Shown here: positions 22,520 through 60,994 of the stretch, in pieces
Position numbering within the stretch: position 1 is the stretch's first letter
How the letters are laid out: each line of letters begins with the position of its first letter
From: Kudoa neothunni
Lineage: Eukaryota; Animalia; Cnidaria
Assembly (NCBI GenBank): GCA_964304625.1
Contig: OZ199838.1
Location: 11,053,607-11,117,606, forward strand
Direction: 5' to 3'
DNA: 64,000 nucleotides
Translations under genes and position numbers: made by a program
The notes under the pieces: generated by a model
Seen by the model: only the letters and a program-made list of their open reading frames with translations
Databases searched by the model: none
What the model was told of the DNA's origin: nothing

Positions 22520-23585
22520 TTAAATTTTAGCCATCTCGGACACAACTTTTTTGTATTTTCCAACTAGTTCTTTCCAATTAACGTTGTAATCTTTTTCGGT
22601 GGATGCAATAGCTTCTTTTACTGTCAATATTTTGGAGGAATAACGTTTGACGTGCTTTTCTACAAGATCAAAATTTTCACGATTCTCCATGAAACATCTA
22701 AAAAGTATCATATGCGAACAACCATTAATGTCACGTACATCAACATGCTTGAGAGAATATCCAAACCAATGTCATCCATGAGAAGGGCGGCCGCTAATTG
22801 GGCCGCTGGATAAATAAGAATGAGATCGGTCGTTATAAGAAAAAAAGCTTCGTTCATTGACTTATAACGAAGCTTCATCACAAAGTGATTCCTCGAGATA
22901 TCATCATGTCGTGGACCACTACTGCTTTCTAAAAGCATATTTACATTAGTCAACACATTAAAAAATGACTAAATACCTTGCTGATTTTCGCTAGAAAAGT
23001 ATGCTGAATCACTTTTTTCATCGGCGCTAGCTTTATTGTTCATATAAAATTCGTATTGCAGTAAGAGGCCATCAATCGCCGCAAATATCGAAGAATGGTT
23101 CAGATCAAAATTCATATTTTTCAACACCTCAACTTCCTTTAGCACAAAATCCTCGCGGTAACTTCTGTAACCTTCAGGGAGCATTTTTATGTATGAACTT
23201 ATGGACATGTAATTATGTTCCACTTTCGCAGAAATATAAAAACACAGATAGCACACAAATAGTGGATCATATTTGTAGATGGATGACTTCAAATAGAATA
23301 TCCTGATGAAATAGCATGCACTGCTGTAAACTGAGGTGGGAAATGATGCTTTGGCTTTTTTGAGAAAATAATCCACAACATCTCTCTGATAATAACTCAC
23401 CAGAAGAGCTTCTTCCGACACAGTCAACAGGTTGCATTTTGGTTCACTAAACGAATCGATTGAAATCAGCTGCTAAAAGCATTAACGATTAGTCACATTT
23501 GTATTTGATCTATCTGCGACCGTAACTGATCTAATTCTTCCTTAGTTCTATATCTCGCAATAGATTTACGTTTAGAGATTTTCAT
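22520..23585 (-). CDS. CCNH: Cyclin H (CAK/TFIIH), with short introns
   Basis: EELDQLR in the N-terminus; cyclin box FPTSVYSSACYFIRIFYLKSSIYKYDPLFVCYLCFYISAKVE; EVEVLKNMNFDL; TTDLILIYPAAQLAAALL. These match cyclin H. Confidence 0.88.
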
Positions 23586-24896: not shown

Positions 24897-27800
24897 GGAA
24901 GTGGCTATATCTCAGGTAATCAATATCTCTGAAACTACTCAATATTGTATTCCCATATTTCACATACCATCTAATGTTTATCTAACTTAGTTTTTCGTAA
25001 AGTTTTGAAAAATTAAAAAAAATAAATATATTTTTTCTTTGTGTGATCGTGTGATCATACACAAGTCTAACAGCAGCTGGGTACGATTATTTATTTTTTT
25101 AATATAATTTCGTCAATTAACATCATTATACACAAAATATAGAAATAATAATAAAGTTCTGAGTTATCTATAACTTTGTCGCGCAATTTTTATTTTTCTT
25201 TCTGATTAGCGTGGCGCAGGATTAGTTCAAATATGTTTGCAATTGGAAAACGATTTCATTCTTTCGAGGAACTTGATAATAATATAAAAAATTACGAAGA
25301 GTCAAACTTTTGCAATCTTTATAAATATCAAGCGAGGATTATTTCGAATATTCGAAATAGAATTACAAAATCAATTAACCAATCTCTGCGGTATTATGAA
25401 ATTACATATCGTTGTGTTTTCAGTGGCAAGAATAAAACAGAATCCGATGGAGTTAGAAACAAACCGACATTAAAGGGAAACTGCCCCGTGGTTTTATCTC
25501 TTAGGACCTCTGTTGATAGTGTAGCACTTGAAGTACATTCTAGTATATTAGAACATAAACATGATTTAAGTGCAGTGCTATATCGAAATCTACCAAAACA
25601 ACGAAAAATTGACCTAAATGACCTAAATCTCGTAGAATTAATTCACCTTAGGGCCAATAAAAAATTAATTCAAAATAAAATTTACAACGAAAAGGGTAAA
25701 AACATCCGTTAAAATCCATCCACAATATTAGAGAAAACAAAGACTCGTTCTGTGATAACCTATGTGTAATAAAGAAAATATTGAAAGATTTCAAATGTTA
25801 CGTTAAGATTTTACATGATAAACATAAAGTCGTTAATGGAACTTTTTTCGCTGACGACAAAGTGAAATCATTTTTGGAATTTTATCCTGAGGTTATGTTC
25901 ATTGATGCAACTAATAAACTCCTTAATTCAAGGTAACTTTTGGAAATGGATGAATAATTTTATATTTTAGAGCCCCGTTATACATATCTGCTGGGGAGGA
26001 TTCTTTTGGTTTGACTCATATTTCGAGTGCCTGTATTCTCTACGAAGAGACGGAAGATTCCACCTAATGGTTTTGTAATACTTTGGCAGAATTGATACCA
26101 AACTTAGCAAAAAATGTACATACCATTTTTACAGACAAGGATGAAAAGCTAGGAAAATATCTCAAATTAAGTTTTCCACAATCATCATTCATTTTATGTA
26201 AATTTCATTTGAATCAAATTTTTCAAAGACATATCACCGTTAACAAATTTGAAATATCTTCTACTAAAAGACAAGAGTTTTTAAGTTGTTTACAAAAAAT
26301 GGTGTACTCGACTGATTACAATGAATATTTTCATTATGTTGACCAAATTCACGATTTTAAAAATACCAAATTAAGTGAATATTGCCAAAGAAATTGGGAA
26401 GGAATATACAATGAATGGGTTATTGGTATTAGCAATACGAAAAATTTTTACGACAGCGAAACCAATAATCGCCTTGAAGTAATAAATTCCAAAATGAAAA
26501 GTGTTGTCCAAAAATTCAGCTCGTTGGCCAACTTCATCCAAGGTTTTTTTTAATTCTAAGTTCAATTAGAATTGAAAGGGAAGTTTCTTCAATTAATCAA
26601 CTGTATTATGAATCAAATGAGATTCTCAACAACAAGCAGGTTCTACATTGTAAAGAATGTCTGACGAAGTATGCACTTATCAGGCTTCAAAAAGAACTTA
26701 AATTCTTGGACAATGCTGCATTATCCTCTAACTCAAATGAAACCACAAATCAATCAACGTGTCTTTGTTTATTTTATCGCCCATTTTCATTACCATGTCG
26801 CAATATTCTAAGCTATAGGTTATTAGAAAAACTTCCGTTATTCCGTAAAACATTGTGCAATGATCGATGGAAAAAGGCATATGGAACGAAGTTTTTAAAT
26901 GCGGTATCTACAACTCAAAATAATACAGAAAATCTTCCTACTGTTGTTCTTGAAAAGAAAAAAATTAACATAAAGACATTTGGACAAAAGTTGAAGTACG
27001 CGTCAAATTTTACAACCAAACCAACCAACACAACTTCCGAATTTTGCGGAGAATTTTTCGAAAAATCAATAAATCTATTGGAAAAAATAATTAGAAGTCA
27101 CGATGTCATGGTTATCGATCAGTTCCTTGATACATATGATTTTTGTTTATAAATGGAATATTAAATTTTATATAATTAAAGATGAAACTGAATTTCAAGA
27201 AAATGTGTAAAATTTACAATTTTACTTTAACTATTAAAATTAGGAGTCATCGAGAAATTTAATAGAAGTCTCAACTACCAAAATACCAAAAATTAATTCC
27301 AATGATGATTTTGGTCCTCTAGAAGAACAAATTGATTGTAACGATGAATCAAACGCCATCGTAGAACCTCAAGTAAACGGTTAAACTTTAAAAAATATGT
27401 TAATTTTTGTTTAGATCTAGTGATTCCTTCTAAAGTTAAATCGATTGGCCGACCACGAGGAAGTCGTTTAACTGCAATCGGAATTAAAAAGAAAAAGAAA
27501 TAAAATTATAAATTTGAATATATAAACAAAATTAATTATGAGAATAATCCCCTACATGTGTCATATGAAAACTGTTTTATTGAGTGATCGCTTAAACTAA
27601 TATTTAAATTCATTATTAGTTTTATTTCATATAACGTGAAGAATATAATTTCTTAAAAAATACAAATATTATTATTATTTCTATATTTTGTGTATAATGA
27701 TGTTAATTGACGAAATTATATTAAAAAAATAAATAGTCGTACCCAGCTGCTGTTGGACTTGTGTATGATCACACGATCACACAAAGAAAAAATATTTTTT

Positions 27801-30559: not shown

Positions 30560-33500
30560 TTACAATCGGTTTGAATTCAAATAAGGGTTGAATAGATTAG
30601 TCGTGCTTCCAACATTGTAAGGGTTATTAGGGTCCAGTGAAGCCTTTGATATATCTCTCTGAAGGCTCGGTTTATTTTCATTGTGATTGCTATCCAAGTA
30701 AGTCAGGTTAAGATTATTTTCGGATGAAAAACTCATCATATGAGCTTGGACCATGTTCAGAAAGTTATCCACAGAAGGAGACGAAAGAAGATAATTGTTG
30801 TCACCGGAGAATAGATTCAAATTAGGCACGAAATTTGGATCATTGAATTCCGAAAGTAAGGCTTGTTGGTTTTGATTATATTTCGCCATCTTATAATTCA
30901 TGTTTGATGAAGTAGAATTTGTGTTGTTCATTTGAAGGGGTTGGTTGGTGATGACGGAGTTGGATTGAAGAGGGCAGTAGGTTCTTTTACGGATTTCATA
31001 TGGATTAAATTGGTTATCTTCTGCGTAAAAGTTGAATTTGGTTGGCTGGGAAAAGGTTGATGATTTGTTTGAGAGTAATTCGAAAAACTGGGGTCAAAAT
31101 GATGGGAATATGGAGTATTTATCATCACAGGTTCGACAGGTAGGAAAGAGGGCATTGGCTGGCCTGCATTTGATTGGGATAAATCATATTGATGTATAAG
31201 TGGTTGGTTGGAATGGGCACTGTAACCCTTGTATGTAAGGTTTTCCACATTTTGTTGTGGTAACGTCGTAGCTGGTTGGTTGTAATGTATTCCAATTTTT
31301 CCCGCAATTCTACTCAAGTATTGAGGATTTTTTGATAGATGATTGTCGATTTTTTGTTTCAATTTTAAAATGCTTTCAGATTCTTTAACATTTTTGTAAT
31401 TTTTAATGTGATGATATATCACACTGAGCACAGCTAAACGGTTATTTTCAATGGCTATATCAATGCAATCCATATTCGAATGACTGGATTTGACTAGACT
31501 GACTTTGGCAGAAAGTAACATCGTAATTGCCTAGAAAAACAAATTATAAAATGTTTAAGTTGTCGATGTGATTTGACCCTTGATACTTGTTATTTTCATT
31601 CTCGACTTTAAAAAAGTATGCAAATACGTTTGAATGGCTTTCAAAGAAGTTTTTAACAACATAAATTTTAATTATGTAAAATTTGATTGAATATATTTGT
31701 CGAATTTTTTGTGTTTTTCTGATTCGTATACATCTTAATACATACATAGGTTTTTTTAACTTAACTAGGCTCTAATTTGTATAAATATTTCTCTCTTACA
31801 AAACATGCGTTTACCTTTTCAAAGTTTGGCTATAGAAAGGAAATGTTTAACTTGTATCATCATTACATTAATTTTAAAAAATTAATTTTTTCGTTATCGT
31901 AAATAAAACTAAATTTTAATGTTGAATTTTCTTTAAAATACTATATTTTAAAAATAATTCTTAATCTATTATAAACGATTAAAAACTACTTTATTTCGGT
32001 TATATTTGAAATTTCTTTAACAACTTTGATTAATTATATTTAATCTATTATCGGACAACTTTTTCAGAATCTAACTAAATTAACTGCAGTGATTTTGTTA
32101 TTTATATTTGATTTTCCTTTAAAATCAATAATATTGTAGCATTCAAAAGTAATCTCTGATCAATCAAATATGCGGGCCAATGATAACAAGGAGGTTAAAT
32201 CTGTGACAATTAATCATAAAAATCACCTCCAACGATGACTCTCTACATGCGATCATCAAGGGGGTCTCTCCTATGTTTGTGGTCACTTCAAAACTTGCTC
32301 TGTATTGATGAAGTATCTTCATCACTTTTGTATCATTTGTAGCAGCTGCCCAATGCATTGATCTCCAGCCCTAATTGTGAATAAATCATGGTTGGTGTGT
32401 GAATCATTTTAAAGTTACATTTCATCGTGGCTATCCAAAGACACTCCGTTATTACAAAAATAATCTAACCAGTCTGTTCTCGAATACATTACACTCAACA
32501 GAATAGGATGGAAAGACTGTTCATTTTTAATATCCATAAAAGGAATATCAGCATTCAAAAGATCTTCACATTTTATAAATATTCCGTTTTTAATGCAATC
32601 GTGTATGATGGTGTTGGCACGATGGTTCATACCAGCGTATTGTGAAAAATCAATCTTGTTTGCGGAACTGCGAGAAGCAGATCTAAATCCATACAAGTCA
32701 CATACGTGGAAAGAAAATTTTATGAAATCATCTACCTCTCGTTGAGTGCATATTTATCGGAACCTAGACTAAACAACGATGGCGGCATATTCGATAAAAG
32801 CAATCTGTCCATAGTGGTCACCACATTTTTCAACGTTCCATCAGTTTTTGGAACAATAACATTGTATGGTAGAACAAAACTGAATTGGCAATTGGGATAG
32901 CATACAAGCGAACTCCAATTTCCAAAGCAATTATTCGCCAAAGGTAGCGGAGAACTAGTAGCCATTGGTTGTGTGAAATTATTCCGAGACGGCACATAAC
33001 TAGATGTGGATAATGGATTGTTTTCTCCATCATAATTAGTGGGAGTCATTGTTAGATATAAATTGGGAGGAAGCGCAAAACTTTCTTTAATATCTTCAGG
33101 AGTGGTAGTGAGCAAGTAATTTTCAGGTTTCCAACCGGAAAAAGTGGGTTTAGTTGGAAGAATACATTGATTTCTGTCTTGGAATATAGTCTCATTTTCT
33201 ATATGATTCGGGATACTCGACTGAGATGAAATATTGGAGGTTGAGGATGAAGTCACAGCGTTGGGCCAATAATTGCTTCGATGAGCGTAATACATCGACC
33301 CCACAAAAATGGACGCTACCAATACAGTGCCAACAACAAAAATGAGCAAAAAGTAACCATTCTCAAAGCTGAAATATCCAGAGTGATCCACTAATGCCGA
33401 CCCCCTTGCATTTACCACTCTGAATATTAATGTATCCTTTTTTAGATAACTTGAGGCAACCAAATTATTGGCTATTTGATGGGGATTCACGACACATGAA

Positions 33501-34592
33501 TTGTCTATACACCTGTTGGGGTCTAGTGTAAACAGTATTGTTGTTGTGATTCGACTAAAGTCTATAAAAATTATCAATTAGACTCACTTCTAATATCGAT
33601 CGTCAATCAATACTTTTCGAATATTTTGAATACATCACAGGCTTCATATCAACTCCAATAGCCACATTGAACATCACCGAAAATTTTAGTGAGAGCTGTT
33701 CTAATATTGACACGAGATTGATGTATGCGAGCCCATAGCTTGATTGGAACTCTACTTCCAGATAGATATTGGACTAAAATATACATGATATAAAATTCTC
33801 AATTAAAAACAATTACTTTGAATTTTTTATTAATAGTTTGGTTTAGATGGCGTTTGATGGTTTTACAAAAATCAATACAAAGCGGTTGTTTTTGTTTGTT
33901 CATTGCGAAATCACAAGAAGTACAGGGTTGTGTTGGTCGACAGTCATCTCCATCAAACAAGCATTCTTTGTTATTACATTCTGGATCACATATTCCGTCG
34001 TTATAACTTTGAATACATTTTTCAGATTTTTCGCAAGAATCCCACGGATCCTGTTTCATATTGCTGCACAAAAGTTGTTCCGCGTGCGATTTGGTACATT
34101 GAGGCTATATTTTTTTAATCATTGAAGGTGCACTGAAGCAAGGAAGTATTTACTTCGCAGTAATTTGACCAATCTAGGCGATTACATTGGGATTGCTCTG
34201 TAGAAATCTCACTACATACGTCACCGTAAATATTTTCTAAGACAACTCAGCGTTTTTAACATATATCAATATTACTATCACAATAGCATTGGGTAGAGGA
34301 AACAGTTTTTGGGTCACAAGCTTCACTGTTGGAACAAACGCAGCTACATTTCTCTTCATAAATAGGAATTTTTCTATTTTTGATTCCAATTTTACAGGTG
34401 TGACGATTTGGACATGTGAAATTTTGACAAAATTTCGTAAATGGATGTTCAGATAATTTAACTCCTTCGTTGCTATCTACATTGAGGTTAGCGGATGGGG
34501 AATGAAAATAGCAATGACGTACATGTGGATAAACAGCACCCATAAAGAATATTAAGCAATAACAACAGAAAAAACTTTGGTATTGAAATCAT
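30560..34592 (-). CDS. NOTCH: Notch-family receptor, extremely reduced
   Basis: Domains in Notch order: signal peptide MISIPKFFLLLLLNILYGCCLS; 1-2 EGF-like modules; LNR DPWDSCEKSEKCIQSYNDGICDPECNNKECLFDGDDC; NOD-like ILEQLSLKFSVMF; NODP-like ILFTLDPNRCIDNSCVVNPHQIANNLVA; TM YFLLIFVVGTVLVASIFVGSMYY; Notch-type ankyrins GWRSMHWAAATND...GETPLMIACRESSLEAITMLL...DIAIENNRLAVLSVI; low-complexity P/S/N/Q tail. Confidence 0.9.
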
Positions 34593-43625: not shown

Positions 43626-46379
43626 TTAGATCAACTCAATAAAGTTATCTGTGGAAACACACACCAACGCTATTGGAAGACTGTGCTCATGGACAACATA
43701 AGTGCACTGACTCTTAGAGCAGTCATTGTTGTTTACCACATAGATTTGTTGATGAACAATCGACAAAAATCCGTGATGGGTGATGAAGACAATATTCTTG
43801 GCAAGAAGTGTTTCTCGCTCGATGCATGAATCCATGCTGTTGCAATAGAGGAAGCAAGAAGCATTTGATTCAGAGTTACGGTTGTTATCCAAGCCAAGCT
43901 CATCAGCAACTGAGTTGATTCTTTCGATTATCTCATGTTTGAATACATCGCTAGCGGGGAGAGTTGACAACACACGTACAGACCTAAATTCATTATCGTT
44001 ATCAAGATGATTGTGATGCTGAACAATTGATTCGGTGCCAAAATCTCCTTGATGAGCTTGATGAAAATTGTTGCTTTCGTTGACAACGTTACTATAATTT
44101 ATCTGATTCTGATGACGATCCTGGTTATTCTGCAAATCCTGTTGAGGTGAAAGTTCTTGGTTGATTACTGGATAATTGTCATTGCTATTATTGATATTGA
44201 GGTGATTTTGGGATTCGATAGAGTGGTTGGATGACGTACGAGGTGGTGACATCCTTACACTTTCATGATTCATAGATGTGTTTGTTTGAAAGTTTGGATA
44301 TTGGTTGTTATAATATGGGCTGATTTCCAGAGATTGTTGATGGTGTATAGAGGAGTTGTGCGAATTTATCGCAGTGTTTGGAACAACAGGGAGACCAACA
44401 TTGGGAGCGTCTGGAATGTAATTCGGAGGCCGCCTAACAACTGCTAAACGTTGCTTCCTCCGCTTATACCTGGGACTGGACCTTTCGTAATGGGAATTAG
44501 GATGTGGAGGAAAATTGTTTATAGTCGCAAAGTTTCCATTATTGTTACTGGGATGACGCGGGTGGGTTATGTAAGGTGGATGTTGGTTGGATAACGAATA
44601 ACGAAAGTCTTTTGGTTTATTTTTTGAACCTTTGGGACGGCCAGGACGTTTTTTCAATACCGAAGTTTGTGGCGGATTGAAATTATGTTGCATATTAACC
44701 ATTGAGGGGGGTTGATTCGAAACATCAACGTTGCTGACGACCCCGTTAAAACTAGTTACAGCAGCTGCAAGTGCCGCATTTTCATTTCGGTAATCATTGA
44801 TCGCTAGGTCGTAACTAGGGTACTCCGGTAAACTGTAGCGTCTACTTTCTGAAGCACCAAGTTGTTTATGGATCGATGGAGGTGAGCCCAGATCAGTTGG
44901 AATAGTACCGTTTTTGGTTTCCTGATTAGAGTTTGATTCAGTGTTGGTGATTGGTACCACTTCATTGGGTGTTTGATCAGCTGAAATATCGACTATTATT
45001 ACAAATGAAAAATGCAAATACTTAGAGCAGAATCCTGAACGTAAGGTACTGAATTTTGTTGAGACGGGCTATCATCAACGGTCATTCTACTTGGTTCCTC
45101 GGAAGCATGAAAATTATTTGCAACTAGATCAGTTCCAGAAGATGTAGGTGGACCCATAATAGTATCTATGAGATATTCAATAGAAAAAATTAATTACATC
45201 ATTCTCTCAAACCTATTCATTATAGAAACTCACCTCGATTAACACTTATACTAGATTGATGATTATCGGTTGCAGGATGGGCCGATTCGTGAATGTTTGA
45301 CACTATAAAATGTCGATCACATACACAGATACACAAAAACAGTTGTCAGTCAATTAAATTAATGCCCAATCCGTAATCACCGCAATACCCACCATCAAAC
45401 AACCCAATCAAATAATCAACTACTTGTTTCTAACACTCAAAATAATAAATTCAGTGATATAACTATCTTGCAATGGATCACAACAACGAGTAATGACGTA
45501 TAAATATATATAAGGATTAAATAAATAATAGTTTTTAAAGCGCATTAACAATTATTCGTAGAAAAGCTTATATAACAACATAACAAAATGATTTCCTATG
45601 CAAACATAGGATAGGATTTGATATGTAAAAATTAGGTGATACAACATGCAATGTAGCTGATGGAGGTTTTTCATGCATCAATCACCACCCACCTTTTTTA
45701 TATTAGGAAATATTATACAACACAACAGAATATTATATTATCATTCATTATTGCTTAGACACGGTTACTGAGCATGAAGAAGAATTACCACATAAATAAA
45801 CTCTCAAGTTGACAGAAAAAATAAACAATCAACCCACTACCTCTAAACTATCTCAACCAACACCCGACTATTCTAACTATTCAGCCACACTCAGCCAAAC
45901 AACAATATACTCTAGATATTCGTTGATATCAGTAATATTATTCTATGTTATTATTATCTTAATACCATTAATAGATCATCTGATTGCAATAGAGATTATA
46001 TTTAAATCTCATTCATGTATCATTAAGTAGAGTGTTATCAACGTAAATGAAACCATATTAGAATGGCGATGATAGCTACTACACACTATCATATCAACTA
46101 ACTCTTAGATGAGAGAATATGTGTTTTAGCTGGGATTTCCGGATAAATAATTATTCTACAATACCACCCACTAGTAAACGAATCGAATAGATAATTCGAA
46201 ATACTTGCTGGTGGTGATTGGCAATAAGGTGTTAGGAAATTACTTCTAATGTAGGATTGTTGTTCTAATGATGAAACAATGGAACAACTCGCATTTTGAT
46301 TTGGTGAGATTGAATCGTCATTGGGAGATACTTCTTCATTGTCAACGTTCAAATTTCTAAAATTTCTAGGCATTTTCAT
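43626..46379 (-). CDS. AT-hook DNA-binding protein with long disordered N/Q/S/P/H-rich region and a ~120-aa globular C-terminal domain; probably 4 exons
   Basis: Large terminal exon carrying KKRPGRPKGSKNKPK and an NLS-like RYKRRKQR. Upstream GT-AG bounded exons at ~45022-45166, ~45233-45301 and ~46168-46379 continue in a similar composition. Confidence 0.8.
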
Positions 46380-59889: not shown

Positions 59890-60994
59890 ATGGGTGAAAT
59901 ACTTGGAGTGCGTGATTTTTTCTATGGAAAATATTTGCTGGGTTTCAGCAAATATTTAGCTGCAGTGAGTCATTACAGATCAATTGGTATGAGTTTGGTT
60001 AAATTTTGAACTCCTTAATTGTATCGCTGTTGTGAACATGGATTTGAGGATGACGCGATACTTTTGGGAAAGATTTGTGTAGATTTGACAAGCTCAGCTC
60101 TAATGGATAACTTTAGGCGCTTCTACAGAAAAATTCGCAACCATATATCCACTTGCAAGCTTTTTGGTGTTCTATCTCGCACAGATTTCTGGAAACATTT
60201 TCTATAGTTTATGTGTGAATCAACCATTATTGTACACTGTGGGAGATGTGAAAACAATGGTGGTGTATTTGGTTATGTGGAGTTTGACCTTCCACTGCCC
60301 AAAGGATCTGTTCTATAGTGTGTTTGGAAAATCAGGACTCGCTTGTGGGTTTGGCGTGCTTCGTGAAATTGAAAGAGTCATAGCAGCAGAAAGCATTACT
60401 AATGCAGTTCTCGCTCAACCAGGCTCATCTCCATATAGCGCTTTTGTGGTCACTCTGGTCACCATAAATCTGCCGTATCATCTCATCTATTTGTTCGATC
60501 AATTGATTAGAGGAGTTGCTATCAAAAAGCATGAAATCTTGTCGCTGTCCTTCACCACCAAAGTTACAGTGCTTGACTCGTTTGTCTACAACTGGTACTT
60601 GTATTTGGGACAAATCTCTGGAAAATACAAAATTATTGACATTATTGCCAATATTTCTAATATCAAATTTTTGCAGCTTGTAGCTTTGTCTGCTGTCACC
60701 TTAAAAACTCTCTCTCATTTCAACTACGATTTGCTTGTCTTTGATGAATTGTTGTTGTTGGCTCCACTCATGAAGATTCTACATCTTCTCCCAGGTTACA
60801 GCAAAAGTGAACCAGTAGCTGCTAAAAGCAGGAGATCAACTTCGACTCGTCACAACGAATCGGATGTGGCACATGACGATGGTGATGTCACCATAATGGA
60901 CGGATCCCCTGACGAGTCTCCTCACGAAACTCCGAGAAAAAGGGCTGCTCGCGCCAGACGAACTGTTAGCTCCACTCGCCGCAGAAAACAATAA
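59890..60994 (+). CDS. TMEM38: Trimeric intracellular cation channel (TRIC), 2 exons
   Basis: Exon 1 59890-~59986 spliced to ~60117. YPLASFL, VMWSLTFHCPKDLFY, LREIERV and FDQLIRGVAIKKHEILSLSFTTK match TMEM38. Charged C-terminal tail. Confidence 0.88.

Follow-up and report, generated by a model that had tools for sequence, protein, structure and literature searches.

Background

A very short Notch ectodomain has already been published for myxozoans. In that report (Lovy et al. 2025, PMC12166595), the ectodomain is called 'particularly short', there are sometimes only three ankyrin repeats, the WxP motif is lost in some species, and the pathway is described as lacking Mind bomb, Neuralized, O-Fut, Fringe, MAML, and Hes. 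For Sphaerospora molnari, the same report describes a cleavage of Notch that is gamma-secretase-dependent and near-constitutive. In untreated S. molnari, the cleaved form predominates and full-length Notch is very low, which the authors read as instant cleavage; this blot result was obtained with one antibody (PMC12166595). Delta-like ligands are reported from two species, C. shasta and T. bryosalmonae.

A further cnidarian receptor, HvNotch of Hydra, has a short EGF array of about six repeats (PMC3180645) and an altered RAM motif (PMC12166595). Hydra possesses a recognisable DSL ligand, HyJagged, and CSL-dependent signalling. Receptor and ligand EGF repeat numbers co-vary in cnidarians (PMC3180645). 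The original prediction for the locus described here had used canonical receptors with about 29-36 EGF repeats and nematode receptors with 10-13 for comparison; given Hydra and the published myxozoan ectodomain, this frame was too narrow.

In human Notch1, LNR-A and the A-B linker residues L1482/F1484 provide the main protection of the S2 site, and the receptor is freed by removing LNR-A, linker and LNR-B together (PMC3145759). LNR, EGF and ANK constitute the diagnostic domain set of Notch (PMC2770060).

Results and discussion

A nine-exon Notch gene

The window, a stretch of 64,000 nucleotides, carries on its minus strand (34592-30928) a nine-exon gene for a product of about 880 aa (Table 1), which is almost certainly the myxozoan Notch ortholog. 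The introns are of the GT-AG type and 39-53 nt long, the last one being 696 nt. The order of the predicted protein is signal peptide, 10-Cys block, LNR region, NOD- and NODP-like segments, TM, linker, ankyrin repeats and tail. A hydrophobic N-terminus and one TM segment in the hydropathy plot agree with type I membrane topology. With the TM helix at about aa 336-358 (pLDDT >90 in the exon 6 model), the ectodomain comprises about 335 aa with the signal peptide counted in, which fits the roughly 300 aa expected originally. The miniature layout, a signal peptide followed through short introns by a Cys block, was recovered as well. Searches and folding of the spliced model were carried out exon by exon, and the joined protein served as a count of frame and length only.

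Table 1 Exons of the Notch gene and neighbouring features in the window
Feature	Position	Strand	Description
Exon 1	34523..34592	-	Signal peptide, aa 1-23; hydropathy
Exon 2	34276..34476	-	Cys block with 9 of the 10 Cys of the EGF-like module; all Cys kept in the ortholog (L017), 44% identity
Exon 3	34154..34236	-	Last EGF-type Cys (CxC-x8-C, Gly in its canonical position); LNR-A remnant (4 Cys), first half
Exon 4	33817..34104	-	LNR-A remnant, final part; A-B linker; LNR-B (33937-34044), intact; LNR-C region, eroded
Exon 5	33614..33773	-	NOD-like (HD-N) segment, assigned by position and motif only; 41% identity to ortholog
Exon 6	32736..33561	-	NODP-like segment with conserved Cys pair (~33410-33544), TM (~33290-33358), long low-complexity juxtamembrane linker without conserved WxP
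Exon 7	32419..32682	-	Two ankyrin-like repeats; 50% identity to ortholog
Exon 8	32227..32370	-	Notch-type ankyrin repeats; Pfam Ank
Exon 9	30928..31530	-	Last ankyrin repeats, then Q/N/P/S-rich tail to the stop codon
Cyclin (cyclin-H-like) exon	22969..23427	-	Cyclin_N; downstream syntenic marker, as the ortholog is followed by a gene with 65% identity to it
MULE-type transposase remnant	25233-27152		ZSWIM3_N and MULE domains; between Notch and cyclin, absent there in the ortholog contig
463-aa frame	43626-45017		Upstream of Notch; AT-hook-like motif, no Pfam match
TRIC channel exon	60164-60994

The genome searched (40.26 Mb in four contigs) is small and AT-rich, has short introns and contains cnidarian minicollagens; the minicollagen Cys motif was found 13 times, against none in the control, and a complete minicollagen is encoded at one locus. 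Because of the minicollagens, the low GC, the tiny introns and the pathway losses, we infer a myxozoan affinity. An orthonectid origin, considered at first, was rejected on account of the minicollagens. Myxozoans typically have four chromosome pairs (bioRxiv 10.64898/2026.02.11.705288). Genome searches yielded a single true LNR locus, and the Cys block likewise occurs once; no other Notch gene was found. A second LNR match (L002) was rejected as a chance hit of 22 codons lying antisense within another ORF.

The ortholog in a second species

Homologue searches with exon 6 detected one relative (P0001), located on a 5.8-kb contig of another species (L017, run SRR31175926, 21% GC); searches beyond it yielded no further relative, and a metagenome scan gave one partial LNR match. 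The ectodomain of this ortholog is equally short. One exon encodes both its signal peptide and its Cys block, and all ten Cys and most intron positions are kept. Exon by exon, the scores between the two genes are far above those of 500 shuffles (for example, 74 versus a shuffle maximum of 40 for exon 3, and 105 versus 54 for exon 9), except in the LNR-C region, where a score of 20 against a shuffle mean of 22 indicates that it is unconserved.

The short ectodomain would be an artefact if EGF exons were missing by assembly collapse or were located further upstream, a possibility already raised with the original prediction. This is hardly credible, because the independently assembled contig of the second species encodes signal peptide and Cys block within one exon. 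No EGF-like pattern was detected, whether in 9 kb of upstream sequence or in the rest of the window. Genome-wide, EGF/EGF_CA matches are few, none of them near the Notch locus, and this part of the contig carries no orphan EGF array.

The splice junction between exons 7 and 8 has to be considered separately. The ortholog uses phase 0 between its ankyrin exons, and from this phase the exon 7 donor at 32418 deviates by one base. Joined to the homologous acceptor (32418/32371), this donor leads out of frame to a stop soon after, which would suit a vestigial or broken gene with a truncated ankyrin domain, or one that has lost nuclear signalling, as would the absence of a conserved WxP and a very divergent CSL. 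Such a gene is nevertheless very improbable: with an acceptor at 32363, which lies 8 nt beyond the homologous one, the frame is open, and exons 8 and 9 are still conserved with the ortholog. Moreover, assembly indel errors are suspected because a minicollagen-like gene (L035, ~1465-1480, minus-strand reading) has a similar one-base frameshift within a run of C. An error of this kind is the likeliest, though unproven, cause of the offset at the exon 7 donor. Intron 6 (32735-32683, 53 nt) is absent in the ortholog and contains no stop in the frame of exon 7; it could have been gained recently or could mask an indel.

A reduced ectodomain

The ten Cys of the first block are located at aa 40, 45, 51, 67, 69, 71, 77, 87, 89, and 98, in the pattern given by the original prediction. 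Their spacing is EGF-like and conserved in the ortholog. Profile searches of the block, performed exon by exon, gave no Pfam or PDB match, its Atlas neighbours (EB/Dumpy/EGF at 0.79-0.84) are a weak lead only, and the pLDDT of its structure model is 39. In EGF modules, disulfides connect Cys 1-3, 2-4, and 5-6. Applying this pairing, the ten Cys can be read as a 4-Cys EGF half fused to a 6-Cys EGF, as would result from deletion of the junction between two repeats. As predicted, there are at most two EGF-like units, and with a 10-Cys block as the sole remainder the classical EGF ligand-binding platform is indeed absent.

Instead of the classical three LNRs, one intact LNR, a 4-Cys LNR-A remnant and an unconserved LNR-C region are present. 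The single LNR is recognised by Pfam (PF00066, E=4e-12; E=3e-12 in the ortholog) and best matches LNR-B of Notch1 (PDB Notch1 NRR, E=2e-12). In an LNR, Cys 1 and 5 form one disulfide. The conserved 4-Cys unit preceding LNR-B is spaced like LNR Cys 2, 3, 4, and 6; the pair 1-5 and the DGxDC calcium motif are missing. In length, the A-B linker equals that of Notch1, but N and K occupy the positions aligned to the plug residues L1482/F1484, and in both species a hydrophobic residue lies one place off the plug position. The NOD label of exon 5 is one of position and motif, with no Pfam or PDB match, and the NODP label of exon 6, undetected by HMM search, is based on position, the conserved Cys pair, and a predicted helix. 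Altogether, none of the EGF, NOD and NODP pieces gave a significant result with Pfam, PDB profiles or AlphaFold. Since the NOD-like and NODP-like segments lie only about 8 aa apart and no RxxR precedes the TM, there is no S1 furin loop. Of the proposed series LNR-NOD-NODP-TM, therefore, LNR and TM stand, the former as one intact copy, while the remaining labels, like that of EGF, fail in HMM tests.

Compared with the human Notch1 NRR (PDB 3ETO, 3I08), the likeness comprises LNR-B, the equal length of the A-B linker, and the NODP-like Cys pair at the same position. The 3ETO structure, like the receptor described here, is a loop-less single chain. The differences are an LNR-A with four out of six Cys, the loss of LNR-C, the plug residues that are not kept, the missing S1 furin loop, and an HD undetectable by HMM.

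Engineered EGF-deleted Notch and synNotch cores consist of NRR and TM, contain three intact LNRs, and are off without pulling. An NRR and a TM without an EGF array are common to these cores and the natural receptor, but the NRR of the latter is eroded. Because synNotch cores rely on an intact autoinhibited NRR, the likeness is superficial and smaller than had been proposed.

The intracellular part

A RAM-type WxP near the membrane is lacking; the sole WxP follows the TM at a distance of about 52 aa and has not been kept in the ortholog. While PMC12166595 left open whether WxP loss reflects an assembly problem, absence in two species argues that the loss is real. Two motifs of the juxtamembrane linker, P-x-F-x-G-aromatic and FGxWxSL (33150-33110 and ~32930-32900), are common to both species and could possibly be replacement sites for binding of CSL or another partner. 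Notch-type ankyrin repeats follow, about five being recognisable by eye, and the best single-stretch PDB matches of exon 8 are Notch ANK domains (E about 1e-9). With LNR-A reduced, LNR-C, the S1 loop and the conserved WxP missing, and about five ankyrin repeats left, the idea of an intact cleavage and signalling chassis could not be upheld.

Myxozoan Notch as described in PMC12166595, with SmNotch of S. molnari as an example, resembles the receptor in its short ectodomain, its fewer ankyrin repeats, the loss of WxP in some species, a pathway without Mind bomb and O-Fut, and its length (893 versus ~880 aa). SmNotch differs by a longer ectodomain, its figures (893 aa in total, 363 aa in the cleaved form) implying about 530 aa before the cleaved domain versus about 358 aa here. 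Set against Hydra, the gene has no more than two EGF-like units, one intact LNR, and no confirmed DSL partner.

Pathway components and a candidate ligand

As predicted, components for shedding and gamma-secretase cleavage are encoded in the genome, namely presenilin, nicastrin, and an ADAM10-like protease gene. CSL is also present (L030/L032, G000:C3 ~4.2047-4.2069 Mb); it is highly divergent and contains an insertion in the N-terminal domain. Family searches of the genome, which are of low sensitivity, gave no match for DSL, MNNL, O-FucT, and Mind bomb, in line with the myxozoan losses listed in PMC12166595. These negative results carry little weight, because the CSL families LAG1 and BTD were missed genome-wide as well, although CSL is present, and because the genome is divergent and intron-rich. 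The expected set of partners was found in part: CSL, the ADAM10-like protease and presenilin were detected, and for the ligand there is one unconfirmed candidate.

This candidate (L031, ~1690-2710; G000:C1 ~5.051-5.052 Mb) reads as a small type I membrane protein with signal peptide, an N-domain of about 150 aa, a half-DSL-like motif C-x6-C-x3-C-x-PRD, one EGF-like unit, TM, and a short tail. From these features it may be a reduced Notch ligand.

If so, receptor and ligand could have been miniaturised together, the 10-Cys module still binding an equally reduced Delta-like membrane protein and cleavage remaining contact-dependent. We regard such a pair as possible but doubtful. It would agree with the conservation, in two species, of the ten Cys of the module and of many further residues in it, with the half-DSL-like motif at ~5.0517 Mb of G000:C1, with the Delta-like ligands of C. 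shasta and T. bryosalmonae, and with the co-variation of EGF numbers in cnidarians (PMC3180645). On the other hand, the candidate has neither Pfam, PDB or Atlas support nor a homologue in the searches, the pattern C-x3-C-x-PR[DN] occurs at chance level (8 versus 16 in the control), and the ortholog has Ala in place of the O-fucose-type Thr of the module. As Mind bomb and O-FucT were not found, it is also doubtful that a pulling force or contacts through O-fucose are available.

Control of cleavage

From the features described above, there is about an even chance that the gene specifies a single-chain, weakly guarded Notch, shed and cut largely constitutively and releasing a RAM-less ankyrin domain. 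According to this reading, the EGF array would have collapsed to one fused 10-Cys module, and the NRR would have lost LNR-C, one disulfide pair of LNR-A together with the C-terminal DGxDC, the Leu/Phe register of the A-B plug, and the furin loop; the weak guarding and the single chain would follow from these NRR losses. An ADAM10-like protease would shed the receptor and gamma-secretase would cut it, either largely constitutively or at a low threshold, so that output would be set by expression, trafficking and turnover instead of DSL pulling. Lacking the conserved RAM WxP, the released domain might bind CSL weakly via its ankyrin repeats or act free of CSL. Notch would thus have been reduced along with the rest of the pathway. 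The ligand-independent cleavage suggested originally has indirect support from the S. molnari blots (PMC12166595).

As a counterpoint to constitutive cutting, autoinhibition may persist, because LNR-B is strongly conserved, the linker length is kept, and the hydrophobic residue is displaced by one place in both species. What opens such an autoinhibited core could then be force, adhesion or a non-DSL partner, each working on the small ectodomain itself, as in the synNotch-like idea put forward originally. The conserved LNR-B, NOD-like and NODP-like segments would fit a folded residual NRR of this kind. We consider it unlikely, since the eroded parts, LNR-A and the A-B plug, are those contributing most of the mechanical resistance in Notch1 (PMC3145759), and no partner was identified.

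Taking the weakly guarded receptor one step further, it may be suggested tentatively, at well below an even chance, that this is a Notch free of ligand control. It would have a single LNR and, as its EGF remnant, the fused 10-Cys module, while furin loop and RAM would be missing; it would be cut constitutively, and its ankyrin repeats would act on a CSL that has diverged with it or on some other partner. If true, its ectodomain would be among the smallest described for Notch, conserved in at least two myxozoan species. To the description in PMC12166595, the present analysis adds the residue-level anatomy of a reduced Notch in two species. LNR-B, the HD-like segments and the last ankyrin repeats survived this extreme reduction; the EGF array, LNR-C, one LNR-A disulfide, the furin loop, and RAM were lost. 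The small protein makes it possible to test what minimal guard the S2 site needs and whether Notch can function without DSL pulling and without RAM.

Other observations in the genome

The only SSU rRNA match reported (L045, G000:C2 ~5.4261-5.4267 Mb) covers the 3' third of the gene, and the sequence upstream is AT-rich and unlike rRNA; it looks like a truncated copy or a collapsed array. Among twelve homeodomain matches, three Otx-like homeobox genes were recognised by eye (L019, L026, L028). Four related genes on G000:C3 (L003, L004, L005, L012), all of which combine a calcium-binding EGF exon with flanking exons that are alike, apparently represent a lineage-specific expansion.
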